Made by a program: the position numbers and the translations under genes. Positions 13,512 through 62,100 of a DNA stretch of 64,000 nt are shown piece by piece. The stretch's first letter is position 1. Each line of letters begins with the position of its first letter. Source of the DNA: Macrostomum lignano (taxonomy: Eukaryota); NCBI GenBank assembly GCA_002269645.1, contig NIVC01001050.1, positions 121,683 through 185,682 of the forward strand. Direction: 5' to 3'. The notes under the pieces are model-generated. The model searched no databases. It was not told the origin of the DNA and worked only from the letters and a program-made list of their open reading frames with translations.

Positions 13512-13722
<211 letters not shown>

Positions 13723-16660: not shown

Positions 16661-16866
<206 letters not shown>

Positions 16867-19204: not shown

Positions 19205-22200
19205 ATGGCGGAAGCAATGGCGATAATCCTAGGGCTCCTGGTTGCTCAGGCCTCCGCTGTAAACCTAAAAGTTGGCGTAATCACGGAGGCCGGGAACTTG
19301 AACAGCTCGCTCATCGACGTCGCCTTCGCCAGACGGGTCAACTACAACTGGAGAGTGCTGCAGGGCCACACACTCTCATATGTGCATGTCAATGTGAGCT
19401 CGTGCAGCTCACACCAGGCTGTCAGGACTGGTGAGTTGAAGCATTTGCTACGCGACTCAATCGCTGCTCTGCTCAACCTGCTCAATCAATGCACACAATT
19501 GAAGCATGAATTGCACGAATGAAAATGTGAGTGCGAGCTGTGAAACTGTGCATGTGTCTGTGTGTCTCGCTCCGCAGTGTGCTCGGAGAGCGGCCTGTCA
19601 GGTCTGATTGGCGTCGGCAGCTGCTCTCTGCTGGATGAAGTGAGCTCACTGAGCAAGTCTCTGCAGCTGCCGCTGATCGCCCTGCCGACTGGACTGTGCG
19701 ACTCTGCTCGGCTGAGCAAAGGTAACTGAGATCGATTTCTGACATCTTGCCACCATTTCTATCTGTATTCGGTTTCGACATGAAATCACGCGGAAATTGC
19801 AGACATGACCATCGTGGGCAGCCACAGCTCGGAAAACATCGTCGCTGCAGCTGCCTCCGTCATCACTTCGGACTCCGTAGCCCGTGGTGTGGCCATTCTA
19901 TACGATAAACAGCAGAGTGAGTGATATTTTGACATTGATACAACAATTAGATGGCGTTTTTGAATGCCTCTATGACTTATTTTAAGTTATTTAGAAACTT
20001 ATTGTTTACAATTTTTAAAATGCTATGTATTGATTCACGCGTGTGCATCCGAATCGCTTCAGGTACAGCAGTGCTGCAGAACCTGCAGTCCAGTCTCTCC
20101 TCTGCCGGTGTGAGCAGTCTCACATTCCGAGTGGACGACACTGTCAACGCTTCTGTTACTCCTGACCTGGTGCACCACCTCAAGCGGCTGGTCAAGAAGA
20201 AAGTGTTCAAGCTGCTGCTGCTCGCCTCTCCTCGCAATGCTCTCAGTGTGCTCAGGCTCGCCAGGGAAGCTGCAGTGATGCAGCAGAACTACTTCTGGCT
20301 CGTGCTCGACACCGGACTGTCCAAGGCCGATGTGCTCAGCGTGACGCCGGCGAACGCGAACGTCGCTCTGCTGAGAGGCAGCGTGTTCACCGAGTGCACA
20401 GCAGCAGTGATGGATGTGTTTCCTCAGTGCCAGACGGACTGGCTTCGGGTGAGCGTTTCATGTGTGCTGCTTGATGGCTGCAGGGATTCATCATGCAGCT
20501 CCGCACGTGTGCAACGCATGCCACTGTCGCACTCGATCTCGCACTCGATCGTCGCATTCGACAGACTCTGGACGCTCGCTTCGTAGACGCCGTAGAAGCC
20601 ATGGCCAAGGCGCTCAACGACTCGCTGCTGGATCCGGGATTCTCTCCCGGAAACGCCTCGTGTGCGCCACTGCGCCACTGGACATCGGGCTCGACTGTGC
20701 TCAACAGACTCATGAGTGTGAGTGAGCTCACTAGCTAGCAAGCATTGACAAGCATTACTAGTTTCGAGCTGGTCTCTCCCCAATCCCTACTCGATGTGCA
20801 GATCAGCGACTATGACACTCAGCGAGGCCTGATCTCGTTCAACAGCTTGACCAGACACTTCAGCTCGCAACGAGTCGAAGTGGTCGCGTCCTACAATGAG
20901 CTGTGGTCGTCTCCGGTCTCGATGCTGAGGTCAGCTCAGTTCGATGCATCGAGCGGAGCTCTGAGCAAGCAGTTCCGCTACAAGGGAGTCGGTTTGGCAT
21001 TCCCCAACACCTTCATGGGATTCAAGAACCAGACCATTGTAGTTTGTACCCCGGAGGTATGTGCTTTACTTTTTTGTGAAATTTGCAGCCATATTTTGTG
21101 CTTTTTAAATTTAATTTACTGTTTGATTTCCGCAGAGTCCTCCAATGACAAATTTTGAGAAGAGGTTTTCCAACAGTACAGTGATTATTAACGGAATGAC
21201 TTTTGATCTGCTTAACATTCTCGCTTCAAAGCTTGAGTTCCGGTGAGGCATTGTGTCTTTTGAGTTATTGGCAGAACTCTGGTTGTATTATGCCAGAATT
21301 GGCTAAGTAGAATTGGTAGTTTTCCAATGCAAACGGAGAGACCCAAGCCTATATAAGAACCCATAACTACCCATTCTGCGCAGGTTCTACACAAAAGACT
21401 CCGACGATGGCAACTGGGGTGCTCCAGTTCCGAATCAGCCATATTTTAATGGATGCGTTGGGGAGTTGCAGCGAGGTGTAAGTAACATTAAAAAATTGTT
21501 GTGCGCCTCTTTTTAGGATAACTACAAGTTAGCTTCAAGTTCTGTAGCGCCGACTGACATTGAAAATTATCCGAAATTAGATTGAACTTTTTATGGTGAC
21601 AAATTTTGGTATTATACGAGCGCTGAGCATGGCTCAACGTGCTTCTTCAACATATCCCACTCTATATATTATCAAAAAATTATTTTTTGGCCCGAGTTTA
21701 GAATTTCTGTTGCTTGACACGAACTGAGTAATAAATACATCATTAAACCACTTTAAAGTTCACTCTCAGGGAGGTTATTGACATAGATTTTTTTGCGGGA
21801 TTTAATCGATAACTTTCCCGGACAGATTGCAAGGATTATTGTATGTATCTTCGCCCCCACACCCCCATCCCCAACTTCAACCATAGACATACAAGTATGG
21901 CTCCGGGATTTATCTGAATACATCCCGCAAAATTGAAGTAGTTTAAATAAGATATTCTATGGGTTTGAGGTCGGTATGCAATTAAATCCCGAGAGCCAAA
22001 GGTCAAAGGCTCGAGGGATTTAAGTGAAATACCGACCTCAAACCCATAGAATATCTTATACTTACCCACTTGTTTGACTTATCTATGGTCGTAAGCGGCT
22101 GAGGACGCGTTTATTGGCCAAAATAAATAAAACAAGTGGGGAATAACATATACTATTAATGGGTTTGGCGCTGCTAATGCGAGCTAGTTGCCATAAGATA

Positions 22201-25090
22201 ACTGCAAATGCTAAATAAAAAAATGCAGTCAAGTGTGTGAAGAATAAATACTCCCAAATCTACTTTACGCTCGTAGTTAGTCACGATCGCAGCCGGACCA
22301 TTCACGAGGACTACAACGAGAGACTCAGTGATTGACTACTCAACGCCTCTGTTTCAAGAGTCGAATGGCATTCTACTGCCCAGGCCTCCTCCAGCGTCGA
22401 AAATGTGGAACGTCTATTTGCCTTTTAACTACGACGTTTGGATTTCAGTAATTGTACTCTTGTTCATCTGCTCGTTTATCACCTGGATTCTAGCGTACTT
22501 TTCACCTTTCACTGCCTACAATCTCAAAGAAGAATACGCGATTGCTGACGAAGTCTGGTTCCAAGAGTACGTTTGGAGCGTCGTTGGAAGCTTCTTACAG
22601 CAGGGCCAGGACTTTTATCCCTTTGCAATGTCGCCAAGAACTATTCTGGCATTCTGGTGGATGTTTACGGTCATTATATATGGAGCTTACACTGGTAGGT
22701 CTTTTTTAGTAACAAGCGCGGACTGTGAAATTTTAGTGATCGTGCCTGAAGCTCTTCATATCTGCATATTTTACTTACTCCTACACAGGAGATTTAACAG
22801 CGCATCTGACCGTCACCATCACTGACTATCCGATCAAGACATTGTCGGATCTGGTGTCTCAAACCGCCATCAAGCCGTACGTTCCAGCTGGCACAAACTT
22901 GTACACCCTGTTCAAGGAGTCTAACTCAGGCGTCTACAAGCAGGTTGCGGATGTCATGGTGGATTTGGGGCCCTACGATTACTGCCCGGATTCCGTGAGT
23001 TGCCAGTGGTTGTATTGCCCTTGCAGAGACGTGCGAATGTCAGGATGTGACTCAAATTTTTACCCACAAAGAGACAGGGGCGCCCACCCAGAGACAGAGA
23101 AGTCCACCAAAAGACCAAATATTGAAGCCTCTCATCGTTGCGGCCCCATCCAGATAAAATTACTGCATACGTAACTGTTCGACAGTGAATTCAATGTTTA
23201 TAAGTACGGCATGCTTTTTCATAATGCTCATACCTAGTTTGATTCTGATGATTAGATAACATAAAATGCCGCCGTCTACGACCGTCTGCTATTTAGATTG
23301 CTTCATATAATTTGAGCTAATAGTATTGAAATATTTAATACCAGTTGAATTTGCGTTTATTAGGACATCCAGTATTTTTTCTTGTCTGCGACCCTGTCAG
23401 CAAAAGATGGAGCCAGACGAAACAACCTGTTTAGCCTTAATCATCAAACAAAACATTACATGAGTTGGGTATATTTTTCTCGCTGAATGCAGCTCATGTT
23501 TCTATTCAGCTTTCCAACTCCCATGTTGTCTGAAGCACTTCAAAGCACTTCATCAAGACTTACAAGTCAACTATGAAAATGAACACGAGGGGGGATCGAT
23601 GATGCGAGAGTGATGCAGGAGTTTTAGGGCGAGAATTCGGCCGTTAAAAACTATAATCAGGAAGTGGTGCCAGCTCTTTTAAGATGGTTGGGACACCGTT
23701 GAGGAAGCTCATCACAGTGGAAGAGCTGCCTCAACAGGACACCGAGCGTGTGCGTCACACAGGAGCTCTCAGAATTTGTTGGTCTGTCAACTCGAGCTGT
23801 CCATGAAATCTAGACTGCTGAGCACTGGAATGAGTCGCGTTATTGCAAGCGGGTTGCTAAGGCTGCTCAGCGACACCCAGCATTAAAACAGACTTGGAGC
23901 TTGCCGTCAGCTCTTGAATACCTACTGCACTCACAGGGCACGAATGGCAGTCACATTATGCCTAGCCTGAATCCAAAAGGCAGAGCAGCGTCTGAAATTG
24001 GGTGATGGATATTAGGGTCTGACTAGCAAATAGCAACCGTGTTCTCAGATAGGCAAGAAAAATCTTGCATATCGAGGAGAAATTTGTTATTTGTTACTTT
24101 TGAAAGTGTGTTGGGAAAAATTTATAAAAAAACTCCTAGATTCGAAATTCTCTGTGAATAAATCAGTTTTAAATTTCTGTTTTCAGGCAGGACCATATAG
24201 TATGGCCTTGTATTTTTTCTACTTTATACAATTTCAGGTTGTCAGACAAGAAAGGGCCTGTTTAAACGACTACACGTACCTATTGGCTATAGCCATGAAG
24301 AACTGCACACAATATTATCTTGCCGAAGAGACGTTCAACACGGCCACAGTGGCATTCATGTATCCCGACGATGCCTACTTCGCTGAGTATTTTGACTTCT
24401 AGTGAGTATACCAACAACGCTTATAATCCTATTTGGCTTTTGTTGCATGCTACATGTTCCAAGGTCCATGGAATTTTGGACGCAAAACCAAGACCTAAGC
24501 CTAGCTTGTGTAAAATTTGTCCGCAGTCAACTGTCGTGCTCCAACGTTTTCTGGACACTACGTAGAATTTAAAACTTACGAGTAGCAATTGTACCAAGTT
24601 AAATATGTTCATCGCTTTATCGAAACATTTTAGCAAGACCTATGGAATAAAGCTTTGTTAGTGCAGTAGCAAAACAGGCAAAATAAGCATGCCTGTCATG
24701 CATTGTAGAACACTTCAGGAAAAGTAAAACAATCATGTTTTAGAGCTATTCAAAGTGAATGCTTTACTATTTCTAGCATTATTGTCAAGCTGTTCATTAA
24801 CTACGGGCGTCAGTGACTACTCAGTTAAATAACTAATTCATTTATTTATTAGTATGCAGAAGCTGCTGGAGACTGGTCTGATGCAGCGGCTATTCAAAAT
24901 CTATTGGTCAAGCGACATCGTCTGCACTGTTGGCAAGTCGACCGAAGCTAACTCCATCAATTTCAAAGGCGTTGAAGGCTGCTTTATTGTCACTGGCTGC
25001 CTTTACGGCGTTGGTTTAATTCTGCTGCTGCTGGAATTGGCCTGGACTAAGCTGGCCAAAAAACAGCCCTTGGATTGTGTCATCTACTGA
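19205..25090 (+). CDS. iGluR-superfamily subunit, paralog A (834 aa, 12 exons)
   Basis: Exons 19205-19430, 19578-19721, 19803-19916, 20063-20448, 20565-20717, 20802-21056, 21136-21242, 21384-21477, 22277-22694, 22789-22994, 24238-24401, 24853-25090, all GT-AG, 2505 nt in frame. Signal peptide, ATD, S1 (DGNWG..FNGCVGELQRG; GPFTRTTTRDSVIDYS), M1, pore GSFLQQG, M3 AYTGDLTAHLT, S2, M4, short tail. Confidence 0.93.
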
Positions 25091-25299
25091 TTTTTTTAAC
25101 TCTATGATTGGTTCGAATTAACGGACAGAACTAATCTAGCTGCGTCTCTTGAGTTAAATACTATTTTAATAATTGACGTTCAGTGGCGTACGCTGAATTT
25201 TTATTGATGATGTCAGGCCTTGTCAAGCCTTGGAGGGGCCGCAACCATAGGGGTGCCGTTATTTTGTGTCTTAGTTGGCGCCCCGCCTCCTATTTGGCA

Positions 25300-27774: not shown

Positions 27775-33283
<5,509 letters not shown>

Positions 33284-35855: not shown

Positions 35856-38800
35856 ATGTCTTCAATTATTTCAATCATTGTCTGTTCGCTGCTTTTCGGC
35901 AGCACTAGAGCCCTGGACCTCAAGATAGGCGTGATCACGGATGCCGGAAGCTTGAACGGCTCGCTAATCGACGTCGCCTTCGCCAGACGGGTCAACTACA
36001 ACTGGAGAGTGCTGCAGGGCCACACACTCTCATATGTGCATGTCAATGTGAGCTCGTGCAGCTCACACCAGGCTGTCAGGACTGGTGAGTTGAAGCATTT
36101 GCTACGCGACTCAATCGCTGCTCTGCTCAACCTGCTCAATCAATGCACACAATTGAAGCATGAATTGCACGAATGCAAGTGTGAGTGCGAGCTGTGAAAC
36201 TGTGCATGTGTCTGTGTGTCTCGCTCCGCAGTGTGCTCGGAAAGCGGCCTGTCAGGTCTGATTGGCGTCGGCAGCTGCTCTCTGCTGGATGAAGTGAGCT
36301 CACTGAGCAAGTCTCTGCAGCTGCCGCTGATCGCCCTGCCGACTGGACTGTGCGACTCTGCTCGGCTGAGCAAAGGTAACTGAGATCGATTTCTGACATC
36401 TTTCCATCATTTCTATCTGTATTCGGTTTCGACATGAAAACACGCGGAAGTTGCAGACATGACCATCGTGGGCAGCCACAGCTCGGAAAACATCGTCGCT
36501 GCAGCCGCCACTGTCCTTACGTCAGATTCCATAGTTAGCAGTGTGGCAGTTTTCTTCGATGGTCTGCAAAGTGAGTGCTGTGAATACAGTAAAATCCTAG
36601 ATAGCTTCAATATTTTCAGTATATTTACGGATGTTTCTTCTATCAAAGTTCAAAAAGTCAGACATAACTAAAGTCTATACTTGATCACTGTAGGCACAAC
36701 AGTGCTGCAGAACCTGCAGTCCAGTCTCTCCTCTGCCGGTGTGAGCAGTCTCACATTCCGAGTGGACGACTCTGTCAACGCTTCTGTTACTCCTGACCTG
36801 GTGCACCACCTCAAGCGGCTGGTCAAGAAGAAAGTGTTCAAGCTGCTGCTGTTCGCCTCTCCTCGCAATGCTCTCAGTGTGCTCAGGCTCGCCAGGGAAG
36901 CTGCAGTGATGCAGCAGAACTACTTCTGGCTTGTGCTCGACACCGGACTGTCCAAGGCCGATGTGCTCAGCGTGACGCCGGCGAACGCGAACGTCGCTCT
37001 GCTGAGAGGCAGCGTGTTCACCGAGTGCACAGCAGCAGTGATGGATGTTTTTCCTCAGTGCCAGACGGACTGGCTTCGGGTGAGCGCTTGATGTGTGCTG
37101 CTTGATGGCTGCAGGGATTCATCATGCAGCACCGCACGTGTGCAACGCATGCCACTGTCGCACTCGATCTCGCACTCGATCTCGCATTTGCATTCGACAG
37201 ACTCTGGACGCTCGCTTCGTAGACGCCGTAGAAGCCATGGCCAAGGCGCTCAATGACTCGCTGTTGGATCCGGGATTCTCTCCCGGAAACGCCTCGTGTG
37301 CGCCACTGCGCCACTGGATATCAGGCTCGACTGTGCTCAACAGACTCATGAGTGTGAGTGAGCTCACTAGCTAGCAAGCATTGACAAGCATTACTAGTTT
37401 CGAGCTGGTCTCTCCCCAATCCTACTCGATGTGCAGATTAGCGACTATGACACTCAGCGAGGCCTGATCTCGTTCAACAGCTCGACCAGACACTTCAGCT
37501 CGCAACGAGTCGAAGTGGTCGCGTCCTACAATGAGCTGTGGTCGTCTCCGGTCTCGATGCTGAGATCGGCTCAGTTCGATGCATCGAGCGGAGCTTTGAG
37601 CAAGCAGTTCCGCTACAAGGGAGTCAGTTTGGCATTCCCGAACACCTTCATGGGGTTCAAGAACCAGACCATTGTAGTCTGTGCTCCGAAAGTAAATATT
37701 TTATGTTTTGAGCTATTTTAACGATTGATTTAACGTCTTAAATTCTTTAGGACGGTTTCTAGCTAACATTTCTTGAATTACTGTGTTTTAGACTAACCCA
37801 TTGACGATGTACTCAGCGTCATACCCTAATAACACTGTTATCATTACTGGTTATACGTCGAACGTTCTCAGCACTTTAGCTTCAAAAATGGAATTTAGGT
37901 TAGTTTATACTATTTTTGTTTTTATAATGTTGCCGCTCTTGACGAACGCATGTCGCTAGAATCTAAAGTTATTGTGAAATCTCAATTACAGGTACATTGT
38001 AAAAGAACCAGACGATGGAAGTTTCGGCAGTCCGACACCAGACTCCAGCTATTTTACCGGTTGCGTTGGCGAGCTGCAGAAAGGCGTAAGTCGCTATATT
38101 ACTGGGTTGTCTATTGTGCATTGAAGTCAAACATTTTATGTTCCATTTTGCTCGAATCGACGCACAGATGGCTACCCTGGCTGCCGGACCATTTACCAAA
38201 ACAACAACCCGCGACGATGTTGTTGACTTCTCCACTGCACTCTTCGAAGAGTCCAATGTTGTGCTCATTCCGAGACCCCCACGGGAGTCGAAGATTTGGA
38301 ATGTTTTCAAGTCTTTTACTGTTGAGACTTGGCTTTTGATTGTTGCGTTTGTGTTTTTGTCGTCGTTTGCCACTTGGACTTTAGCATTCTTCTCACCGTT
38401 TACGGCTTACAACCTGAAGGTTGACTACTCCGTTGCCGACGAGATCTGGCTGCAGGAGTACATCTGGAGTGCGGTAGGAAGTTTCATGCAGCAAGGCCAG
38501 GACTTTTACCCGTTCTCAATGTCACCAAGAATAACCATGGCGTTTTGGTGGATGTTCACCGTGGTTATTTATGCGTCGTACACAGGTGAGATCAAGCTTG
38601 CAATTTTGTTTTTAATAAAACAAAAATTATAGCTCACATTAGCGTTGACCATTGCAGGCGACCTTACCGCCCATCTCACGGTAACCGTAACGGATGTCCC
38701 TATCAAAACGCTGTCGGATCTTGTTTCCCAATCTTATATTAAGCCCTACGTGGAATCCGGATCAAATCTGGAAACTCTTATGCTGGAAGCAAAATCAGGC

Positions 38801-39876
38801 ATTTACAAGCAAATTGCTGAGAGGATGGTTATTATTAATGAAGTATGTACCACAGTAAGTACATGTAACTTGAAATTTTGCGTCTCAGTTTTTGTAAGCT
38901 TGTTTTCTATAATCTCAAGCAACAGCATTTTGACTCTAAAATCTTACGATCTCTTAAGACGTGGAAGCCGGACCAGGCCTGCTTAGGGGACTACACGCCC
39001 CGGCTTGCCTCTGCAATGAGGAACTGCTCGCTGTACTACCTGGCGGAGGAGCATTTTAACACGGCCACCATTGCGTTTGTTTATCCTGACGATGCTTTTT
39101 ACGCATCACTGATGGACTTCTAGTAAGTTATTAGGTATTCTAAGAGGGATGCACGTTTTGGAAAAGTAGCAACACAAGAAAATTTCTGAAGCAGCGCCTC
39201 CTTTTGGCGTGTTTAAAACGCAAGCTGTATATGAAATCACTGAAAATAGTTTCTGGACAATATATAGACAGTCGTAGCTTTAAGTTATTGTTACTTGTAA
39301 ATATTATATTACTCAACAAGGAACCCATGTATTAGTAATAGTATTTAGCTGAGCAGGGTATCAGGAAATTCCGTGGAAATTCCGTCACTAGTTCACATAC
39401 TGGAGAGATAGGTGACAATGTAAAAGATAGTAGCGCCAGGACGATCAGTAAGAGAGATTTAGTTTTTGGGAATTGCAGCTTTACTACGAGTATTAAAAGG
39501 AGTTTCCTTCAGCCACATGCTCTGCTAGCTCCTACTACTTTTATCTATTTATATAACAAATATCACTAAATAAAAGGCGCATTCAGCGACTAGAAGCAGC
39601 CTACTGAGCAAAATAAGAATCCAATTTATAACTTCCAGTATGCAGAAGATGCTGGAAACTGGCTTGACGCAGAGATTCTTCGCAAACGTCTGGACAAACT
39701 ACGACGCCTGCTCGTCGGGTCGCTCGACCGAGGCCGATTCTGTCAACTTGGAGGGCGCCGGCGGTTGCTTCATCATTGCACTCAGCCTGTACGGTCTGGG
39801 ACTGCTGATCCTGCTGGTCGAGCTCTGCTGGACCAAGCTGGCGAAGAAGCAGCCGCTGGACTGTCGAATCTATTGA
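35856..39876 (+). CDS. iGluR-superfamily subunit, paralog C (832 aa, 12 exons)
   Basis: Exons 35856-36084, 36232-36375, 36457-36570, 36694-37079, 37201-37353, 37437-37691, 37792-37898, 37992-38085, 38168-38585, 38658-38854 (3 codons shorter), 38959-39122, 39639-39876; 2499 nt in frame; ends KKQPLDCRIY*. Confidence 0.93.
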
Positions 39877-41725: not shown

Positions 41726-45119
<3,394 letters not shown>

Positions 45120-45452
45120 GGCTATCTACCATACCAATCTGTCTATTTACCATACCAATCTGTCTATTCTACTAGACTAATCTGCCTATCTACCATGCCA
45201 ATCTGTCTATTCTACTAGACTAATCTCCCTATTTACCATACCAATCTGTCTATTCTACTAGACTAATCTGCCTATCTACCATGCCAATCTGTCTATTCTA
45301 CTAGACTAATCTCCCTATTTACCATGCCAATCTGTCTATTCTACTAGACTAATCTCCCTATTGACCATACCAATCTGTCTATTCTACTAGACTAATCTCC
45401 CTATTTACCATACCAATCTGTCTATTCTACTAGACTAATCTGCCTATCTACT
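45120..45452. repeat. ~21-bp minisatellite with alternating variants (TCTACCATACCAATCTGTCTAT / TCTACTAGACTAATCTCCCTAT); LINE insertion site
   Basis: Units on both sides of the LINE (41605-41637 and 45120-45452). Confidence 0.85.
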
Positions 45453-46244
45453 AGGGGCCAAAAGAGAATGGAATAAAAATTATTTAATAAACTACATGTA
45501 GCTCCTTGACATCTCAGTCTTAACATCTCAGAAATTCTCCCGTAAGCCTTGATGACACTGTGAAAAGGGATGCAGTGCTACTGACTTAATCACAAAATAG
45601 AAATTTCAACACTTATGTTTTGTTTAAAGTCACTACAAAGTTAAATTCCTCCTACAAGAAGTGTTCCGCTCAAAGGACAAAAGAGGCTCAGAAAAAGTGT
45701 GGGACGAAGATTAGGAACGAACCATGTCACACATTTTGCTAAATTTTTTTTTACTGTAAGACTGTGGAAGCATTGAACGTTCTTTTAGAATAGTTATTCG
45801 ATTAGAGCCTCATCTTTAAACTTTGTTGAGTTTGTGGTTTTAGGACAGTGTGTGGTAGGCCACTGCAAGCAGTGAGCTTCGCTCTTGATTAGGGCCATTG
45901 GAGACAAACGGTAGTAGCACTGTATTCGTGTGCATGTTTACTGAGGTCATGGTGACACTAGGCCGACAGGATAGAATGTCTCAATACTCCACACGGTTAA
46001 AGAGAAAAAAAATCAATGCATAGCAACGTCAATTGGGCTCAGGTTTTTTAAAAACAAATCAAAAGTTTCCGATAATGCGGAGCCACAAACCATTAAATCC
46101 ATCGGAGGAAAACTGACCCATTGAAAATTAAAACTTAATTTGAGACTGAACGAAGCAAGAGACTTTAATTGTCTTCTATGCAGAAATACGAGTAAACTAA
46201 CTAGGGTTACACATTTAATTTAAAAGCACAAGTTGTAGATGTCT

Positions 46245-47748
<1,504 letters not shown>

Positions 47749-48082: not shown

Positions 48083-51000
48083 ATGTACAGGTTTATTTCA
48101 CTCATTTTAAGCTCATTGCTATTTGGCTCCAGTGCGCTGGACTTCAAGATAGGCGTGATCACGGAGGCCGGGAACTTGAACAGCTCGCTCATCGACGTCG
48201 CCTTCGCCAGACGGGTCAACTACAACTGGAGAGTGCTGCAGGGCCACACACTCTCATATGTGCATGTCAATGTGAGCTCGTGCAGCTCACACCAGGCTGT
48301 CAGGACTGGTGAGTTGAAGCATTTGCTACGCGACTCAATCGCTGCTCTGCTCAACCTGCTCAATCAATGCACACAATTGAAGCATGAATTGCACGAATGC
48401 AAGTGTGAGTGCGAGCTGTGAGACTGTGCATGTGTCTGTGTGTCTCGCTCCGCAGTGTGCTCGGAGAGCGGCCTGTCAGGTCTGATTGGCGTCGGCAGCT
48501 GCTCTCTGCTGGATGAAGTGAGCTCACTGAGCAAGTCTCTGCAGCTGCCGCTGATCGCCCTGTCGACTGGACTGTGCGACTCTGCTCGGCTGAGCAAAGG
48601 TAACTGAGATCGATTTCTGGCATCTTGCCACCATTTCTATCTGTATTCGGTTTCGACATGAAATCACGCGGAAGTTGCAGACATGACCATCGTGGGCAGC
48701 CACAGCTCGGAAAACATCGTCGCTGCAGCCGCCACCGTCCTTACGTCAGATTCCATAGTTAGCAGTGTGGCAGTTTTCTTCGATGGTCTGCAAAGTGAGT
48801 GCTGTGAATAAAGAAAAATTCTAGAGAGCTCCAATGTTTGCAGTATATTTACGGATGTTTCTTCTATCAAAGTTCAAAAAGTCAGACATAACTAAAGTCT
48901 ATACTTGATCACTGTAGGCACAACAGTGCTGCAGAGCCTGCAGTCCAGCCTCTCCTCTGCCGGTGTGAGCAGTCTTACATTCCGAGTGGACGACACTGTC
49001 AACGCTTCTGTTACTCCTGACCTGGTGCACCACCTCAAGCGGCTGGTCAAGAAGAAAGTGTTCAAGCTGCTGCTGTTCGCCTCTCCTCGCAATGCTCTCA
49101 GTGTGCTCAGGCTCGCCAGGGAAGCTGCAGTGATGCAGCAGAACTACTTCTGGCTTGTGCTCGACACCGGACTGTCCAAGGCCGATGTGCTCAGCGTGAC
49201 GCCGGCGAACGCGAACGTCGCTCTGCTGAGAGGCAGCGTGTTCACCGAGTGCACAGCAGCAGTGATGGATGTGTTTCCTCAGTGCCAGACGGACTGGCTT
49301 CGGGTGAGCGTTTCATGTGTGCTGCTTGATGGCTGCAGGTATTCATCATGCAGCACCGCACGTGTGCAATGCATGCCTCTGTCGCACTCGATCTCGCACT
49401 CGATCGTCGCATTCGCATTCGACAGACTCTGGACGCTCGCTTCGTAGACGCCGTAGAAGCCATGGCCAAGGCGCTCAACGACTCGCTGCTGGATCCGGGA
49501 TTCTCTCCCGGCAACGCCTCGTGTGCGCCACTGCGCCACTGGATATCGGGCTCGACTGTGCTCAACAGACTCATGAGTGTGAGTGAGCTCACTAGCTAGC
49601 AAGCATTGACAAGCATTACTAGTTTCGAGCTGGTCTCTCCCCAATCCTACTCGATGTGCAGATCAGCGACTATGACACTCAGCGAGGCCTGATCTCGTTC
49701 AACAGCTTGACCAGACACTTCAGCTCGCAACGAGTCGAAGTGGTCGCGTCCTACAATGAGCTGTGGTCGTCTCCGGTCTCGATGCTGAGGTCGGCTCAGT
49801 TCGATGCATCGAGCGGAGCTCTGAGCAAGCTGTTCCGCTACAAGGGAGTCAGTTTGGCATTCCCCAACACCTTCATGGGGTTCAAGAACCAGACTATTAT
49901 TATTTGTGCTCCTGAGGTATGTATGGCCATGAGAACTGATTTGAATGTGTTTGGACTTTCTAACTACAAATTAAGAGCTACATTCATCTCTGCATTGACT
50001 ACTTCAGAGTGCTCCAATGACTGTGTTTCAGCAGAAGTTTGCAAACAAGACTGTTGTAATGAGTGGAATGGTTTTAGATTTGCTTCAGGTTTTATCAAAA
50101 AAGCTTGAGTTCAAGTAAGTTTGTGTTGACCTCGTTTGCCGTTTATATTGAATCGTACAAGTAGGAGTCCAAAGGCATCAGCATTGATTTTTAGGTTCAT
50201 TACAAAGGACTCCCACGATGGAAACTGGGGCTCTCAAAGCGACTCAGTGTATTTCACTGGATGTGTTGGGGAGCTCCAACGAGGCGTAAGTAGAATGATG
50301 TTTTTATTAAAGGCTAATCGATTCTAAGAAGCTTTTCGCAACGTTTTTAGGAAGCAGCAGTTGCAGCGGGTCCTTTCACAAAGACTACCATTCGTGACTC
50401 TGTCGTGGACTTTTCAGCACCACTTTTCGAAGAGTCCAATGCAATTCTAATCCCGAGACCGCCCCCAGAGTCTAAACTCTGGAACGTGTTTGCACCGTTT
50501 TCAATTGGAATCTGGATGATGATAGTTGCCGCGATGCTGGTGGCAGCGTTTGTCACCTGGATAATAGCCTACTTTTCGCCGTTCACGGCTTACACTTTGA
50601 ATCTGGATTACGCAATCGCTGACGAGATATGGCTGCAGGAGTACCTGTGGAGCATCATTGGCAGCTTTATGCAGCAAGGTCAGGACTTTTATCCGTTCTG
50701 CATGTCCTCGAGAACTGTTCTGGCCTTCTGGTGGTTGTTTACAGTCATAATCTATGCTTCGTATACAGGTGAGACCTGGGGTTCCATAGTATTAGCTCAG
50801 TATTAGTATTAGTCCATAGCTCTACACGTGTACTTGCTACACTGTAAATGGAAGTTTTAGAATATGTTACAGTAAGCAGACTCTCTATAGCTTTTAATTT
50901 TTGCTTCCAGGTGATCTGACTGCGCACCTGACTGTAACGGTGACAGACTATCCAATCAAGACCCTTCAGGACCTGGTGTCACAGACAGCTATTAAGCCCT

Positions 51001-52065
51001 ACGTTTCTGTTGGAACAAATCTGCACACTTTGCTGGCTCAGTCGAATTCTGGAATTTACAAACAGATGGCCGACATGATGGTTGAGATTGGTCCGTACGA
51101 AGAATGCCCATCGTTTGTAAGTCCGCTAAACGCTTGTTTTTTAAATGCCAGAATATTTCAAGCTTTTTTCAAATCACGAGTACACTGAATGATTTGATGC
51201 GTATTTTGGTAACTTGGATTTTTCCTCATGTGTTGACAGCCTCGGAAAGCTGATGAAGGCTGCATGAACGATTATTCATTTCTTCTGGCAATCGCAATGA
51301 AAAATTGTTCTGAATACTATGTGGCCGATGAGCTGTTCAACACGGCGACTTTGGCTTTCATGTTTCCGGAGGACGCATACTATGCGGATTCGTTTAATTT
51401 TCAGTGAGCAATTTTACTTTAAATTTATGACACGGGCTACTTTTCCTGCAGTACTGCTTCAAAATGCGCAAGATTTATTTTACTGAAGTAAAAACTTTCT
51501 ATCAGAAAGGTGATGCAAACTTAGACACTGGAGTAGAGATCTAGACTTCATGTAAAGTGTTTTTCAGTGTTCTAGATCTGGCTTGAATTCCTAGTAGGAG
51601 AATGGTTTGATAAAATTGATATTTGGTTTTAAACTAAAAAACAATAGCTATTTGCAGTAGGTTATGAGCACCCTTACGTTGACATAAAATCCTAGTATTT
51701 ATATATCCCTTTAATCTGCTAGAGCCCAAAGCAGAGACCTAGATGAGATGTCTTGAAGTTCCTAAGATTAAAATAGCCTGACCTGCAGTTGGTTTGTCCA
51801 CAGCTAAATTGGTTCAACGTAATTCAGATTGCAGAAGCTGCACGAGTCGGGTCAAATACAGCGCTGGTTCGAGTTCTATTGGTCCAGCGACACAGTTTGC
51901 ACCGTTGGAAAATCAGCCGAAGCCGATGCTATTAACCTGGAAGGCGTAGGTGGCTGCTTCATCATCGCCCTGAGTCTGTTCGTGGCTGGACTTCTCATTC
52001 TGACGATTGAACTGATCTGGACTAATCTGGCCAAAAAGCAACCCCTTGACTGCCTGATTTACTGA
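48083..52065 (+). CDS. iGluR-superfamily subunit, paralog D (833 aa, 12 exons)
   Basis: Exons 48083-48308, 48456-48599, 48681-48794, 48918-49303, 49426-49578, 49662-49916, 50008-50114, 50195-50285 (1 codon shorter), 50351-50768, 50911-51116, 51240-51403, 51828-52065; 2502 nt in frame; ends KKQPLDCLIY*. Confidence 0.93.
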
Positions 52066-52226
52066 TGCAGATCGTGAAAATTCCAGATTGGGCTACGATT
52101 TCTACGTGTTAATCAAGGTTGCTCTATTTCTGTGTGATAGAAGGTATTACTATGATACTTTTTAACAGATAATGAAACCCTTTCAAATCAAATTACCTAA
52201 GACCAGTCACCGGTACTGGAATAACT

Positions 52227-54193: not shown

Positions 54194-54490
54194 TATACTC
54201 AGCAACATTGAAAAGTCGCCACCCATTGCCCCAGTGAGCAGCAGTATCTTTCGACCAGCGTCTATCACCTGGCCAACCATTTTGATATTAAAAAAATGCT
54301 TGAAAAAACAGTGAAAACCGGTCGGAAGCTTCAATCCACCCAATCTTCACCCTCCGCTCTTCCCAATACCTTCTCACCCAGTTAAACTCTGCGTCACGTA
54401 ACGCAATTTGCGTCACTCAAAAGTCAATCCTTGAGCTAGAATTTACTGCGCACTCTCAAAGGTGGCGACTTTTTAATGTTGTTAAGTATA
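54194..54490. mobile_element. MITE related to 52227-52879, ~30-bp imperfect TIRs with TA ends
   Basis: TATACTCAGCAACATTGAAAAGTCGCCACC vs GGTGGCGACTTTTTAATGTTGTTAAGTATA. Confidence 0.7.
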
Positions 54491-55587: not shown

Positions 55588-56790
55588 TCAATCAAAAACA
55601 GGCGATCCGCTGAATGAAGCGTGACGAGCCACAGCCTTCTTCAGATGCTCTCCGTTTACAAATTTTGAAAACACAGCCAGCTGAAAAGTATTTTTGCCGA
55701 GACATTTGATGATTCGGTAGACCCGCTCACTCCACGTCTTCTGTAGCTTTACGCCCTTCCTGTCGTCTCGGCGTGCATTTTGAAGTCTCACCCGATCTCG
55801 AACCTTGAACTTCTCAGCTCGAGTTCGTAAAGCTTCGTGGCGCCTTTTTATTCGCTATTGGCTCAATTTGATTCTCCGCGCGATGAATTTTCGGGATGCA
55901 GCTCGCTGTTTGTTCTTCTCGATCATCCAACCCCATTTACAGGTGCCAAATCGGGCTTCAAGGAAGTAGACAGCAGCGCCACTGTCTCGTTGCCTAGCAA
56001 AGGTTCGAAGCTAAATGCGGCCTGGAATGTTAAAATTCCAGTGACTGAATGTCGTCGGCTACTGTAGGTCAGTTGAATTTCATTGAGCCTGGTGTCCCAG
56101 TCAGTTGGATTATCTGATGAGCGATACTTTCTTAATAGACTGATGCAGTTCTGGTTCAAGCGCTCGGTCCGTCCGTTAGTCTCTGGGTTATATGCGCTCG
56201 TCTTTCAGTTCCACCAGATTCTAGAAGGACGTCAATAATTGAGTTGCGGAACTCCCGTCCCTGATCGCTGAGGATGATGCGCGGCAAACCGAACAGTGCA
56301 AAGAGGTCCTTCAGTTCCTTCGCGATGGGCGCAACTTGGATGTTAGACAGAGCCCGGAACACAGAAAACTTCGTAAATTTACAGCACACTGTCAGAATAT
56401 ACGAGTACTTGGATCCTGAATCAGTGGTTGTTGGCATCGTGATGCAGTCGACACAGAGAAACCAAAAAAGCCTGTTCGCATTGTCCGGAATTTCAATCGG
56501 ATGAATTTCGCTTTGCTTGGTTGAAAATTTCTTGTTGACAAATTCGCACTTGGCGCAAGCTTTCACAACGGATTTGGCTATTGGCGATACAGGGAATTCA
56601 ACGTCGCGAAGTATCGCGAAGTACGACGACGTAGAGAGGCTCAATGTGCTCTTTATACCTACGTAACTTCCCTGAATGTGCAAAGCTTGCATTTTGCTCT
56701 TGACTTCTGCGATGTCGTAAAAAACTTTGCGCTTCTCTTCAGACCTCTTTCTCTGACTGTCCGCTTTGTTCTTGACTTGACAGTACAACG
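55588..56790 (-). pseudogene. Decayed Gypsy-type/Ginger-like DDE integrase
   Basis: Zn-finger-like H..CAKC, catalytic VDCIT, SDQGREF and (after a frameshift near 56200) YNPETNGRTERLN; WDTRL; C-terminal FKVRDRV..RRDDRKGVKL..W..VY.I..LG...F.L...VNGEHLK; fragmented over three frames. Confidence 0.8.
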
Positions 56791-56967
56791 AGCCTTCTTC
56801 TCTCCTCTCTCTTCTCTTTTCTACTCTCCTAGCCTAATTCATCTCTCCTCTCCTCTCGTCTCCTCTTTGCTCCTTTATTCCCTCGCCTCTCCCTTCTCCT
56901 ATCTCCTTTCTTTCTTTTTATTACCTCTCATCTCCACCTTCTTCCGGACCGCAGTCATGCTCTAGGT

Positions 56968-57409
56968 CAGGGGTCGACAAACTTTTTTACCTCAAGGGCC
57001 AGATCGAGAACCTGGCGCATGACTGCGGGCCAGAGAAAGGGAGAGAGAAGAGGCTAGTGAATGAAGGAGAAGAGAAGAGATAAAATAGAGAGAGGTGGGG
57101 AGAGGAGAGACGGGAGGAGAGAGGAGGAAAGGGAGGAAGAAGATAGGGAAAAGGGGGGAGAAAAGAGAGAGGAGGGAAAGGAGAGGAGAAGGGAGAGGAA
57201 AGGAGAGAACTAGCATTAGAACAGAATTCGAGAGAGGAGAGGAGAGGACAGGAGAGATAAGAAGGGAGGTGAGAGAAGAAAACTGAGAAGAGACAAACCT
57301 TGAGCGGGCCGGATTGCTATTGTGAAGTTTCAAAGGACCCGAGGGCCGGATAGAGAGGCTTTGCGGGCCGCATGTGGCCCGCGGGCCGGAGGTTGCCGCG
57401 CGACCCATG
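56968..57409 (+). mobile_element. hAT (Charlie-like) MITE with GA-rich interior
   Basis: CAGGGGTCGACAAAC left end, GGCCCGCGGGCCG..GTTGCC..CGACCCATG right end, CTCTAG on both flanks. Confidence 0.7.
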
Positions 57410-57416
57410 CTCTAGC

Positions 57417-57616
57417 CTCTAGGTTCTTTATCTGGCCCTTGGGGTAAAACAGTTTGCTGACCCCTGCTCTAGGTTCTTTATCTGGCCCTTGGGGTAAAAC
57501 AGTTTACCGACCCCTGCTCTAGGTTCTCTATCTGGCCCTTGGGGTAAAAAAGTTTGCCGACTCCTGCTCTAGGTTCTTTATCTGGCCCTTGGAGTAAAAA
57601 AGTTCGCCGACCCCTG
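57417..57616 (-). repeat. Four tandem 50-bp copies of a hAT-MITE terminus
   Basis: AGGTTCT at 57421, 57471, 57521, 57571; minus strand reads CAGGGGTCGGCAAAC..TACCCCAAGGGCCAGATAAAGAACCTAGAG. Confidence 0.85.
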
Positions 57617-59064
57617 ACATAAGCGAAATGAGCAAGCGTGAAAAAACAGCGCGCCTGTTGGTTGCCGCTGGAACCCCTAGTAAACAAGGTGCAAGAAAAT
57701 CCTGTTCTATACGACCTTCGGCACCCTGACAATCGAAATACCTGGAAAAGGACGATCAAAAAAGTGCAATATGCTAGGTTTTTCGTTAGCTCGCGCCAGT
57801 TATATCAATAATTGCGCTGGCCTTTGTACTCTGATACAGACTGTACACTGGTATTAAATTCAAAGCACAAAATAGTTTTCTCAAACGTGCTGAAAATATG
57901 TACGATTTTTGGGCTCAGCTGGAGATATGTGCGCACAGTATTGCTCGAGTAACAAATTGGAAAACTTGCATCGCCCTCCTCTAAACCCCAGCCCAGTCAT
58001 TCTCCTCAGTATCAGTCAGTTGATTGCAGTGCGCTTATCAGGTAAATACATGCAACTTGACCAACTTGCCACCCCAATCTTTATTCACCCCGGACAGTTC
58101 AAGACCAAGAATATTTCAAAGCCGATTTTGTTGTGCCATGGATTAATCCAGCGTAGGATATCGCAAAGCGAAAAACATTTTGCTTTGCGATGTCCCCAGG
58201 ACAAATTAAGCCCCCCCCCCGGTGAACGGAGAGCCTAACACCGGCTAGGCAAACCGGTCAATATTGCTGTGAGCGGTCTATTTAGTAAACTCGTTCATGT
58301 CAGTGTAAGACTTTAAACTGGAACCCCAATCCCAGCTCCAGACGAAATCCCTGGGGTAAAGCAGATCAGTGGTAAAAGCTTATCACTCGCGCCACGACCC
58401 CTAGTTCGATTCGATGATCGGCCACATAAACTTGAGGCTTATATGCCATGTCGCTTTGTCCCAATAAATCTCTACTAAGACCTACATGTACTAAGAATCT
58501 GAGGCAAAGTTCAATGCAGAAAAAATCTGCCACTTGGCTAAATATACCGCAAGAAAAAGCGCATTGCGGACAAATCTCGGCGGGCACTTCGTCTGCGGGA
58601 ATTTCCAGTGCTCCCCAGAGGGACATACCTGACGATTAGAACGTTAGGGCCGCTGTGTGAGCGTGTGTGAGTGCGTGCCTGCGTACAGTATTGGCGCTCT
58701 GGCATCTGCTCAGGAGTCAGTGGAATGAGCAGAATTTCCTCAGCGCTGTTTGCAAGATGATGTCAAAAACTTGCATACGAAACCATCCAAACCAAATCCA
58801 AAAGGCAAGGCTCACCAACGCTAATAGTGCAAAAAAACTCAAATCAACAAAGCAAAATAGAAACCATAAAAATTTGAGATGATTCAAATCAATTGACTTG
58901 AAGGCATTTAGACTTTACCACAAAAAGAAAAAAAATTTTTCTGTAAATCTCAAATTTCTTGCACAATTGCCAACGACATGAAATCCGAAGCCACGAAACT
59001 TGAAACTGAACTGCCAGTGCCAATTAATTTGAAACATAAAACTGCAGAGATTCTTGGTTCTGGC

Positions 59065-59071
59065 TATAAAA
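59065..59071 (+). promoter_or_regulatory. Candidate TATA box upstream of paralog E
   Basis: TATAAAA about 65-70 nt upstream of the ATG at 59134; position only, region is AT-rich. Confidence 0.3.
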
Positions 59072-59133
59072 ACCCAAGGAATTAAATACTTGAGAAGCAG
59101 ATCTTTGATTATCCTATCTCATTTGCACTCAAC

Positions 59134-62100
59134 ATGAATAACTTCTTGATGCTGATTTCTATTCTATTTCTTGGCAGCATCTGCCAAAGCTCACATGGAC
59201 TGATCTTAAAAATAGGCGTCATCATAGAGGCCGGAAACTTGAACGGCTCGCTCATCGACGTCGCCTTCGCCAGACGGGTCAACTACAACTGGAGAGTGCT
59301 GCAGGGCCACACACTTTCATATGTGCATGTCAATGTGAGCTCGTGCAGCTCACACCAGGCTGTCAGGACTGGTGAGTTGAAGCATTTGCTACGCGACTCA
59401 ATCGCTGCTCTGCTCAACCTGCTCAATCAATGCACACAATTGAAGCATGAATTGCACGAATGCAAGTATGAGTGCGAGCTGTGAAACTGTGCATGTGTCT
59501 GTGTGTCTCGCTCCGCAGTGTGCTCGGAGAGCGGCCTGTCAGGTCTGATTGGCGTCGGCAGCTGCTCTCTGCTGGATGAAGTGAGCTCACTGAGCAAGTC
59601 TCTGCAGCTGCCGCTGATCGCCCTGCCGACTGGACTGTGCGACTCTGCTCGGCTGAGCAAAGGTAACTGAGATCGATTTCTGACATCTTTCCATCATTTC
59701 TATCTGTATTCGGTTTCGACATGAAATCACGCGGAATTGCAGGCATGACCATCGTGGGCAGCCACAGCTCAGCAAACATCGTCGCTGCAGCAGCCTCCGT
59801 CATCACTTCGGACTCCGTAGCCCGTGATGTGGCTATTCTATACGATAAACAGCAGAGTGAGTGATATTTTGACATTGATACAATAATTAGATGCCGTTTT
59901 TGAATGCGCTAGCCTCCATGACTTATTTAAGTTATTTAGAAACTTAATGTTAGGATTTTTAAATGCTACGTATTGACTCACGCGTGTGCATCCGAATCGC
60001 TTCAGGTACAGCAGTGCTGCAGAACCTGCAGTCCAGTCTCTCCTCTGCCGGTGTGAGCAGTCTCACATTCCGAGTGGACGACACTGTCAACGCTTCTGTT
60101 ACTCCTGACCTGGTGCACCACCTCAAGCGGCTGGTCAAGAAGAAAGTGTTCAAGCTGCTGCTGTTCGCCTCTCCTCGCAATGCTCTCAGTGTGCTCAGGC
60201 TCGCCAGGGAAGCTGCAGTGATGCAGCAGAACTACTTCTGGCTTGTGCTCGACACCGGACTGTCCAAGGCCGATGTGCTCAGCGTGACGCCGGCGAACGC
60301 GAACGTCGCTCTGCTGAGAGGCAGCGTGTTCACCGAGTGCACAGCAGCAGTGATGGATGTGTTTCCTCAGTGCCAGACGGACTGGCTTCGGGTGAGCGTT
60401 TCATGTGTGCTGCTTGATGGCTGCAGGGATTCATCATGCAGCTCCGCACGTGTGCAACGCATGCCACTGTCGCACTCGATCTCGCATTCGACCGTCGCAT
60501 TCGACAGACTCTGGACGCTCGCTTCGTAGACGCCGTAGAAGCCATGGCCAAGGCGCTCAATGACTCGCTGCTGGATCCGGGATTCTCTCCCGGCAACGCC
60601 TCGTGTGCGCCACTGCGCCACTGGACATCGGGCTCGACTGTGCTCAACAGACTCATGAGTGTGAGTGAGCTCACTAGCTAGCAAGCATTGACAAGCATTA
60701 CTAGTTTCGAGCTGGTCTCTCCCCAATCCCTACTCGATGTGCAGATCAGCGACTATGACACTCAGCGAGGCCTGATCTCGTTCAACAGCTTGACCAGACA
60801 CTTCAGCTCGCAACGAGTCGAAGTGGTCGCGTCCTACAATGAGCTGTGGTCGTCTCCGGTCTCGATGCTGAGGTCAGCTCAGTTCGATGCATCGAGCGGA
60901 GCTCTGAGCAAGCAGTTTCGCTACAAGGGAGTCAGTTTGGCATTCCCCAACACCTTCATGGGGTTTAAGAACCAGACCATCATTGTTTGTACACCTGAGG
61001 TACTGTTTCTCATTAACGTTTATTTGAGTCTATCTTTAGTGCACGTGCGTAGCTACGTTATATGTATACTAAACCGGAAATATATTTTTCAGAGCTCTCC
61101 ACAGACGGTGTTTCAGCAGATATTTCCAAACAAGACAGTTATTATCAGCGGAATGGTTTCGGATGTGCTTAGTTTTTTAGCGTGGAAGCTTGAATTTCGG
61201 TTGGTGCTTTGTTATCTGTTTAGTTACTATAAAAATCCTAATTTTAATAAGTCCTCTATTTTTTGTAAGGTTCATCACTAAGGACTCTAACGACGGAAAC
61301 TGGGGTACTCCTCAGAGTGATTCAATCTACTTTACGGGATGCGTTGGCGAACTACAAAGAGGAGTGAGTGGGATATAGCTGAATCTGAATGGCCGATTCA
61401 CGTCAGCTATTGTTTCGCATCTTGCCTTCTTAAATTGCAGGAGGTTTCACTAGCGGCAGGACCTTTCACAAAGACTGCCATCCGTGATTCCGTCATCGAC
61501 TATTCCTCAGATCTGTTTCAAGACGCCAATGCAATTCTGCTGCCAAGACCGCCGCCGAAATCGAAGATTTGGAATGTTTTTACTCCGTTTTCGATCGGGA
61601 TTTGGCTTTTGATATTGTCGTGTGTGTTTCTGACAGCTTTTATCACCTGGCTATTTGCTTTCTTCTCACCGTTCACGGCTTACAATATGAATCTTGATTA
61701 CGCAATCGCTGACGAGATCTGGCTGCAGGAGTATCTGTGGAGCATCATCGGCAGCTTTATGCAGCAAGGCCAGGACTTTTATCCGTTCTGTATGTCCTCG
61801 AGAACTGTTCTGGCTTTCTGGTGGATGCTCACCGTCATTATCTATGCTTCGTTTACAGGTGAAGCTTTGTCATATTTTCTTCTAGTTTGTTTGTTGGCGC
61901 TTTAGTATGCATCCAACTGCATTTTAAACCTGCATTTTGCAATTCCAGGTGATCTGACTGCCCACCTGACTGTGACGGTCATCGACTATCCAATTAAGTC
62001 CCTGCAGGATCTGGTGTCGCAGACAGCTATTAAGCCCTACGTATTCACTGGAACAAACCTGCATACTTTGCTGGCTCACTCAGAGTCCGGAATTTACAAA

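Follow-up and report, generated by a model that had tools for sequence, protein, structure and literature searches.

A near-identical amino-terminal domain shared by five otherwise diverged glutamate receptor genes of Macrostomum lignano, probably homogenised by gene conversion

Introduction

Regional gene conversion has been documented in the clustered protocadherin genes of the teleosts fugu and zebrafish (PMC1852091), in which tandem receptor paralogs share one near-identical coding part while another part is diverse and bears the specificity. A comparable arrangement is described here for the flatworm Macrostomum lignano, in a stretch of 64,000 nucleotides (nt) of assembly GCA_002269645.1 (contig NIVC01001050.1:121,683-185,682, forward strand), hereafter called the window, with positions counted from its first letter. 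The window holds an array of five ionotropic glutamate receptor (iGluR) genes, A to E, whose amino-terminal domain (ATD) is almost the same in every copy. With a probability of roughly 85%, the ATD segment has been repeatedly overwritten among these five old paralogs through non-allelic (ectopic) gene conversion, while everything outside it has evolved independently in each gene.

As in the teleost protocadherins, the condition is diagnosed by identity at synonymous sites and by a raised GC content at third codon positions, GC3 (PMC1852091). The two systems differ in what has been homogenised. In the protocadherins, this part comprises the C-terminal ectodomains, lying inside one large variable exon, and the true constant region is added by splicing. 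In Macrostomum, in contrast, it is an N-terminal domain distributed over six exons and four introns, present as a separate copy in each gene, inverted in one of them, and with an island of two haplotypes inside it.

The Macrostomum receptors have the layout of the vertebrate AMPA, kainate and delta iGluRs (such as GluK2, PDB 5kuf), namely the ATD, the ligand-binding segment S1, the membrane segment M1, a pore loop, M3, the second ligand-binding segment S2, and M4. They differ from the vertebrate proteins in sharing only ~25-30% identity with them, in having the gate sequence AYTGDLTAHLTV for SYTANLAAFLTV, and in lacking the acidic residue of S2. In vertebrate iGluR families, the ATD is the most diverged domain among subunits and is not homogenised; ATD dimerisation governs subunit assembly (PMC5665649). 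The Macrostomum array thus inverts the usual iGluR rule, in which the ATD is the most divergent, assembly-specifying domain.

An exhaustive search found the nearest relatives outside Macrostomum among mollusc, nemertean and annelid proteins, with 33-37% identity over the ligand-binding domain (LBD) and the transmembrane domain (TMD). These are 'delta-1-like' and 'kainate 3-like' iGluRs of Haliotis, Pecten, Saccostrea, Lineus and Owenia, whose names are automatic and for which neither clustering nor ATD homogenisation has been reported. All matches above 37% identity belong to M. lignano, no other Macrostomum sequence being present in the collections searched, and the Macrostomum genes form an expanded branch of their own, at least 53% identical among themselves.

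Insect variant ionotropic receptors (IRs), with their co-receptors IR25a and IR8a, also join a common assembly and trafficking element to variable elements that tune ligand recognition. The tuning IRs have lost one or more agonist-contact residues, most of them have no ATD, and their common element is a separate co-receptor subunit. In Macrostomum, by contrast, each subunit has an ATD, and the common element is the homogenised domain itself. The literature searched contained no previous account either of gene conversion in the ATD of an iGluR or of the Macrostomum family described here; regional conversion itself is known, and its restriction to the iGluR ATD appears to be undescribed.

The homogenised block

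Gene models were built with a GeneWise-like spliced aligner, and copies of the block were located by self-BLASTN. Spliced alignment yielded five 12-exon iGluR genes with GT-AG introns and intact open frames (exon 12 of gene E lies past the window end), arranged within 45 kb as A> <B C> D> E>, with A and B tail to tail and B and C head to head. All five copies had been recognised in the initial annotation; that gene B lies on the minus strand had been missed.

Self-BLASTN found exactly five copies of a ~1.75-kb block with 96-98% identity (A 19266-21062, B 31429-33187, C 35866/35928-37687, D 48142-49922, E 59205-61006), within ~20 nt of where they had been placed. Pairwise alignment sets the homogenised tract at 19267-21034 in A, 35921-37669 in C, 48145-49894 in D and 59208-60977 in E, all on the plus strand, and at 31457-33200 on the minus strand in the inverted copy B. 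In the ten pairwise alignments, the ends agree within ~15 nt on both sides, the exceptions being stretches of older, weaker homology upstream in C-D and downstream in D-E. The block runs from the 3' part of exon 1 to the KNQT motif in exon 6, includes introns 1, 2, 4 and 5, and encodes the mature ATD.

The near-identity originally claimed for the whole block, introns included, holds for exons 2, 4, 5 and 6 and introns 1, 2, 4 and 5, which are 90-100% identical in all ten pairs; it breaks down in a diverged patch at exon 3 and intron 3, treated below. In the spliced models, every intron 1 measures 147 nt, exon 4 differs between A and E at two of 386 nt, and intron 4 of C and D carries micro-indels of 5-6 nt and small duplications, just as had been noticed. 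Further downstream, the predicted contrast is equally clear. Exons 7-12 are 48-83% identical in nucleotides (in exon 7, A and E agree at 21 of 36 amino acids), and introns 6-11 are unalignable between copies and range from 65 to 1624 nt in length, with intron 8, for which a span of 65-799 nt had been given, measuring 799, 637, 82, 65 and 77 nt in A to E.

Synonymous divergence (dS) is 0.00-0.07 within the block, while downstream it reaches 0.90 in D-E and is saturated in all other pairs, a contrast that excludes chance. Upstream of the start codons, pairwise identity in 100-nt windows averages 0.31-0.35; it reaches 0.78 across the first mature codons and 0.94-1.00 in the block except for the patch, then drops to 0.45 in the last 25 nt of exon 6, with values of 0.45-0.54 downstream. 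The variable sites in the block amount to 4.9% in introns and 3.5% in exons. Promoters and signal peptides are old and mostly unalignable between copies.

Both edges lie where they had been proposed, just past the signal peptide and just past KNQT. The 5' edge is a short gradient of identity across the first ~15 codons of the mature protein (in A, identity climbs over 19267-19312), and the stretch in which the copies are 96-100% identical starts ~20 codons past the signal peptide. The 3' edge, immediately after KNQT, coincides with the junction between the ATD and S1, taken as the start of S1 in the alignment to GluK2 (SNRSLIVTT), and falls 22 nt short of the exon boundary (the exon-6 donor of A is at 21056).

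The two-haplotype patch

Inside the block, 200-220 nt covering exon 3 in its 3' half, the whole of intron 3 and a few nt at the start of exon 4 occur in two deeply diverged forms, type 1 in A and E and type 2 in B, C and D. In gene A (19850-20070, plus strand), the type 1 patch reads ...AASVITSDSVARGVAILYDKQQS followed by an AT-rich intron 3 of 146 nt; that of gene E (59790-60013, plus strand) has an intron 3 of 149 nt and differs from A at 35 of 217 nt. The type 2 patch of gene B (32420-32617, minus strand) reads ...AATVLTSDSIVSSVAVFFDGLQS followed by an intron 3 of 123 nt, the length also found in C (36504-36701, plus strand, by pairwise alignment) and D (48728-48925, plus strand). The two groups differ from each other at 85-92 of 198 aligned nt, with a dS of 1.4-2.1, whereas members of {B,C,D} differ from one another at only 7-8 of 198 nt. 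Placed from the alignment alone, the patch lies opposite GluK2 residues ~130-152, which take in the end of a helix and a strand.

A third variant, ...AASIVTSDSIISSVAVFYDGLQS, intermediate between types 1 and 2, is found in the UniProt model P0006, which comes from outside the window, indicating that several old patch alleles circulate among genes with an otherwise common ATD. In addition, the type 2 patch of D conflicts with the sister relation of D and E in the 3' half of the gene. This split indicates that patch haplotypes have themselves been shifted between genes through rare long tracts.

Evidence for gene conversion

The identity of introns and synonymous sites means that constraint at the protein level is not its cause. 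Since old, unalignable sequence flanks the block on both sides, each event would have had two breakpoints, giving an internal replacement and not a single unequal crossover. The inverted gene B is homogenised to the same degree as its neighbours, its sub-blocks differing from those of D at 8 of 538, 6 of 480 and 6 of 483 nt, as close as in any pair in direct orientation. Unequal crossing-over cannot homogenise an inverted copy, and non-crossover conversion can. Simple unequal crossing-over was thus rejected, given that both flanks are diverged and copy B is inverted.

The block is also a mosaic. Outside the patch, 14 parsimony-informative sites fall into six conflicting partitions, and 41 of the 91 site pairs fail the four-gamete test, which gives a Hudson-Kaplan lower bound of at least six exchange events; the homoplasies expected by chance number only ~0.4. 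Most pairs also gave a significant result in a Sawyer-type run test, which was not relied on as the patch dominates it. Along the gene, three topologies succeed one another: C pairs with D in the 5' flank and signal peptide, the patch separates {A,E} from {B,C,D}, and D pairs with E in the 3' half (100% bootstrap).

Base composition fits GC-biased conversion, with an effect of moderate size. The homogenised introns 1, 4 and 5 have a GC content of 48-57%, compared with 30-36% in intron 3, which belongs to the patch, and 26-46% in almost all of introns 6-11. Likewise, GC3 is 0.71-0.74 in the block and 0.53-0.59 downstream. Among singleton changes in the block, 31 go from strong to weak bases (S>W) and eight in the opposite direction, an excess which indicates that the block sits above its mutational equilibrium.

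Several features by which concerted evolution is recognised are found together at this locus: linked paralogs, silent identity confined to a tract, a mosaic history and GC enrichment. The initial annotation had proposed that gene conversion keeps one ATD while the rest of the gene diverges, and the silent-site and intron identity, the inverted gene B, the mosaic sites, the shifting topologies, the GC content and the relatives outside the array all speak for it. The sequences themselves show the pattern, its mosaic structure, its independence of orientation and the escape of the relatives examined outside the array; from these we infer that recombination did the overwriting, that it did so repeatedly, and that selection helped to fix the edges. 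The block, including introns 1, 2, 4 and 5, would evolve in concert at a divergence of 1-3%, and promoters, signal peptides, ligand-binding domain, channel and introns 6-11 would diverge independently to saturation. Beyond the edges, the flanks would be too diverged for heteroduplex formation, holding the tract ends in place in a self-limiting way, and selection would probably remove tracts entering the ligand-binding domain. The heterology of the patch would normally halt tracts as well, splitting the block into sub-blocks of ~580 and ~970 nt.

Several observations weigh against this interpretation. A permutation test of the pairwise homoplasy index (PHI) type for clustering of the incompatibilities gave p = 0.27, on only 14 sites. 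The GC signal is moderate and may partly be a property of the ATD itself, because in gene F, a relative outside the array, GC3 is 0.67 in the ATD and 0.63 in the rest. All pairs are similarly diverged (~1-3%), near the 1.4-2.4% that separates the M. lignano subgenomes (PMC10733133), so that the last exchanges may date back as far as the polyploidisation and conversion may no longer be in progress. The nucleotide data come from a single assembly, the second source being at the protein level only and consisting of partly chimeric automatic UniProt models. Finally, the comparison was made within M. lignano, while the classical proof of concerted evolution is the species-wise clustering of paralogs.

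Relatives outside the array

Members of the family outside the array have escaped homogenisation. Gene F (P0010, NCBI BOX15_Mlig017883g2), on contig NIVC01000845.1, is 50-51% identical to the cluster genes in the ATD and 53-62% in the rest of the protein, and its introns 4 and 5 have a GC content of 0.43 and 0.40. For P0009, identity to the shared ATD is ~59%; this model was treated as the same gene as P0013/P0014, or as their homeolog, and P0013 clusters with gene B (82% bootstrap) in the LBD/TMD tree. For P0021, identity is 50% at the ATD end and 47-55% in S1-M2. In the LBD/TMD tree, these outside members nest among the cluster genes. Their diverged ATDs imply that homogenisation is a property of the cluster and not of ancestry, and, going by the relatives examined, the ATD in this family normally diverges no more slowly than the remainder of the protein. 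A search with the ATD of F for a second subcluster with a constant ATD returned three fragmentary F-like models, none of them with a 3' half.

The model of gene F (L001 298-10081, from NIVC01000845.1) has exon 4 in pieces, split by ~7.3 kb and ~2.1 kb of GC-rich sequence, and NCBI annotates only a partial protein for this gene; an insertion in the ATD region and a model error are both possible.

This locus offers an unusually clean case of domain-restricted concerted evolution spanning exons and introns, in which the inverted copy, the old heterologous island inside the tract and the relatives that escaped homogenisation in the same genome serve as three internal controls. In practice, trees and orthology calls based on the ATD would be misleading for this family, and the mapping of short reads to the ATD exons ambiguous.

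Alternative explanations

One possible addition to gene conversion is adaptive, and we regard it as tentative and somewhat doubtful: selection would keep a common ATD for heteromerisation or for binding a common partner, and would diversify the ligand-binding and pore modules. Purifying selection acts on the ATD, which occurs with at least seven types of signal peptide, and the 3' edge of the tract lies at the junction between the ATD and S1 instead of at an exon boundary. ATD dimerisation is moreover the key step in the control of iGluR assembly (PMC5665649). However, at the available resolution the LBD and TMD show purifying selection only (dN/dS of 0.12-0.18 in D-E, dN being the nonsynonymous divergence), the patch makes the ATD not strictly uniform, and edges at the limit of homology are also predicted by neutral, self-limiting conversion. 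A neutral origin, with conversion tolerated in the ATD and purged or blocked elsewhere, is equally compatible with the data.

A single recent burst, in which one donor ATD was copied into the old paralogs, or chimeras were formed by unequal exchange, followed by mutation, seems to us improbable. It would account for the similar divergence of all pairs within the block (0.6-3.5% per sub-block, on the order of subgenome divergence), for the excess of singletons over informative sites (45 vs 14) and for the non-significant PHI test. However, a burst predicts a star tree with almost no sites splitting the genes two against three, and not the 14 such sites, in six conflicting partitions and with at least six exchanges, that are observed. 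The closeness of pairs also varies by segment, A and D having no synonymous differences in the 5' part and A and B only three differences in 480 nt over exon 4 and intron 4. Furthermore, the high GC of the introns together with the surplus of S>W changes implies that fixation has been biased for a long time, and identical tract ends in at least four independent copy events would themselves need explaining.

An artefact of assembly or polishing, by which consensus calling blurred the ATDs or misassembled alleles or homeologs came to look like an array, is very improbable. Assemblies of M. lignano are indeed difficult, with 36% of the length of Mlig_3_7 in chimeric scaffolds and 93% of read pairs mapping to multiple places (PMC10733133), and the window is rich in minisatellites. 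Nevertheless, the copies differ by 1-3%, with copy-specific single-nucleotide variants and indels, and the two-haplotype patch persists within the block. The argument against assembly collapse already made from such variants is strengthened by the separately deposited UniProt models, in which variants specific to E (G124, A134, D152) and to C (S188) recur and which repeat the pattern of a different signal peptide with the same ATD. Cross-mapping erases small differences only and cannot turn ~50% divergence into 98% identity. Besides, the 3' halves are synonymously saturated, far over the ~2% divergence of homeologs, and the five genes are therefore neither alleles nor homeologs.

Purifying selection alone, as an extreme constraint on the ATD with no exchange, would agree with the dN/dS of 0.1-0.35 in the block but is refuted by introns 1, 2, 4 and 5 and synonymous sites being conserved like replacement sites, and by F, P0009 and P0021, whose ATD diverges as fast as the LBD/TMD or faster.

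Gene models and extent of the array

Gene A (19205-25090, plus strand) encodes 834 amino acids in an intact open reading frame (ORF) of 12 exons, which by spliced alignment lie at 19205-19430, 19578-19721, 19803-19916, 20063-20448, 20565-20717, 20802-21056, 21136-21242, 21384-21481, 22281-22694, 22789-22994, 24238-24401 and 24853-25090. Gene B (27775-33283, minus strand), inverted relative to the other four, has 12 exons and an intact ORF of 841 amino acids; it is matched by the UniProt models P0004 (signal peptide, ATD and S1) and P0030 (exons 9-10, identical). Its intron 11 (1145 nt) contains a long tetranucleotide microsatellite at ~28052-29150. Gene C (35856-39876, plus strand; 12 exons, 832 amino acids, intact ORF) is represented by P0001, which carries its signal peptide, its specific ATD variants and its exons 10-11. 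Gene D (48083-52065, plus strand; 12 exons, 833 amino acids, intact ORF) corresponds to P0012, with 100% identity over 245 amino acids, and its closest paralog in the 3' half is E (76% amino-acid identity, dS 0.90). Of gene E (59134-63940, plus strand), the window contains exons 1-11, or 759 amino acids so far. Its signal peptide and specific ATD variants are carried by P0007 and P0002, and its intron 10 (1624 nt) owes its length to a minisatellite with a 14-nt period at 62307-63640.

Every gene has its own copy of each exon and its own start and stop codons. The splicing of shared constant exons to variable ones, as in the protocadherin or UGT1A type of locus, was considered and ruled out for this reason. 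The five genes look functional, judging by their intact ORFs and by dN/dS values of 0.1-0.35 in the block and 0.12-0.18 in D-E.

At least seven types of signal peptide are joined to the shared ATD when the window and the UniProt models are taken together, namely those of A to E plus the P0005 and P0006 types. The chimeric model P0002 fuses exons 1-2 of gene E to the ATD of a P0005-type gene (signal peptide MAAIFFMCIY...), from which the array likely goes on beyond the window end (>64000); this model suggests a sixth member just 3' of E. For P0006 and P0008, which are UniRef-only models, no encoding contig was found.

The two homology searches matched A-E to automatic UniProt models only and to no NCBI-annotated protein, whereas gene F and the more distant paralog BOX15_Mlig020788g1-g3 (three copies) do have NCBI entries. 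If the NCBI annotation is transcript-based, expression of the cluster genes may be weak or highly localised.

The blocks of B and C form an inverted repeat of 1.75 kb with ~97% identity, its arms ~2.7 kb apart, and both promoters and the 5' ends of both first exons lie between them. This repeat is a potential substrate for inversion of the segment that it encloses.

Receptor architecture and possible function

The predicted proteins A-E are iGluRs of complete architecture, with an ATD, a split S1/S2 ligand-binding domain, M1, a pore loop, M3 and M4. In A and B, respectively, PF01094 (ANF_receptor) scores 57.2 and 49.4 bits (cut-off 25.4), PF10613 (Lig_chan-Glu_bd) 54.8 and 47.2 bits (cut-off 30), and PF00060 (Lig_chan), which covers M1-M4 including S2, 91.9 and 74.8 bits (cut-off 30.8). 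The ATD aligns to that of GluK2, and gene A aligns with GluK2 from end to end (residues 28-811, E = 2.6e-40), with AMPA and delta receptors scoring close behind. By sequence, the five proteins are thus assigned to a Macrostomum-expanded branch of the AMPA/kainate/delta-type iGluRs. An AlphaFold2 model of the shared ATD, made from an alignment of eight sequences, had a mean predicted local distance difference test (pLDDT) score of 35.6 and was unusable; at this low confidence, its beta-alpha-beta pattern could fit a periplasmic-binding-protein fold.

In the pore, QQGQDFYP stands opposite QQGSELMP of GluK2. The gate motif of M3 (SYTANLAAF) is recognisable, with about half of its residues kept, as AYTGDLTAHLTV in A, CFAGNLTAYLTA in B, SYTGDLTAHLTV in C and D, and SFTGDLTAHLTV in E. 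The Arg and Thr/Ser contacts to the agonist carboxylate are kept in all five proteins, in the motifs GPFT...R(D/A)(S/D)V and G(T/S)N, whereas the acidic residue of S2 that contacts the alpha-amino group is absent from A to E (DYTYLLAIAMKNC, DYTALLALAMRNC, DYTPRLASAMRNC, DYSFLLAIAMKNC and DYSYLLAIARKNC, respectively), with no D or E opposite LMEST of GluK2, where the alignment carries a gap of six residues. Residue equivalences were taken from a HMMER alignment to GluK2, and the agonist-site residues are those that we presume to match R485 of GluA2 and E705 of GluA2/E738 of GluK2. The absence of the acidic residue together with the kept arginine weakly hints at ligands other than amino acids.

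S1, the TMD and S2 have diverged alike (51-81% amino-acid identity), with a dN/dS of 0.12-0.18 in each for D-E, and no sign of positive selection was seen in these three regions at this resolution. All five proteins keep a full ATD, unlike the tuning variant IRs. On analogy with other iGluRs, a common ATD could plausibly allow promiscuous co-assembly or the binding of one partner, in line with the combinatorial repertoire, for example chemosensory or neuromodulatory, that the initial annotation had proposed. A much more elaborate scheme can be imagined, in which the ATD would be a selected constant module for assembly or docking that lets any of the seven or more subunits bearing it join any other, or one extracellular partner, each adding its own ligand-binding domain and pore to a combinatorial sensor array, the two or possibly three patch haplotypes would act as assembly classes, the ligands would be compounds other than amino acids (e.g., organic acids), and the whole would serve as a flatworm chemosensory iGluR system. 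We consider this scheme unlikely; if true, it would represent a principle of iGluR chemosensation different from the insect solution of IRs and co-receptors. In any case, identical ATDs on very different ligand-binding and channel modules constitute a natural experiment, making the role of the ATD in the assembly of subunits and in partner binding testable in a tractable flatworm.

Neighbouring sequence

An Rfam scan of the window gave no match. Upstream of the array, an ORF of 318 amino acids at 5621-6577 (minus strand) matches PF16214, the N-terminal transmembrane region of adenylyl cyclase, with E = 3.9e-7 and 30.0 bits (cut-off 30.9); it probably represents the opening exon of an adjacent gene for adenylyl cyclase. 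Another ORF, of 317 amino acids at 11990-12943 (plus strand), has a hydrophobic N-terminus and no Pfam match; it may encode an unannotated secreted protein or may be spurious.

Mobile-element sequences were found between the receptor genes. A non-LTR (long terminal repeat) retroelement occupies 42091-45180, between C and D, with its reverse transcriptase at 42868-44769 (minus strand), RNase H at 42091-42813 (minus strand) and endonuclease at 44635-45180 (plus strand). As the endonuclease ORF lies on the strand opposite to the other two, the element must be rearranged or nested. Between D and E, an integrase-core (rve) remnant at 56156-56788 (minus strand) derives from an LTR-type element or a DNA transposon.

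Mini- and microsatellite arrays are unusually dense in the window, at 1-860, 2210-3457, 4033-4683, 13488-13722, 15043-16010, 16660-16866, 28052-29150, 46244-47747 and 62307-63640. The array in intron 11 of gene B (28052-29150) is the reverse complement of that at 16660-16866, and the one at 46244-47747 is AT-rich with a strong G skew. Finally, gene A is flanked by an inverted pair of ~310 nt with 88% identity (11062-11370 vs 25821-25523), which probably consists of fragments of a dispersed repeat.

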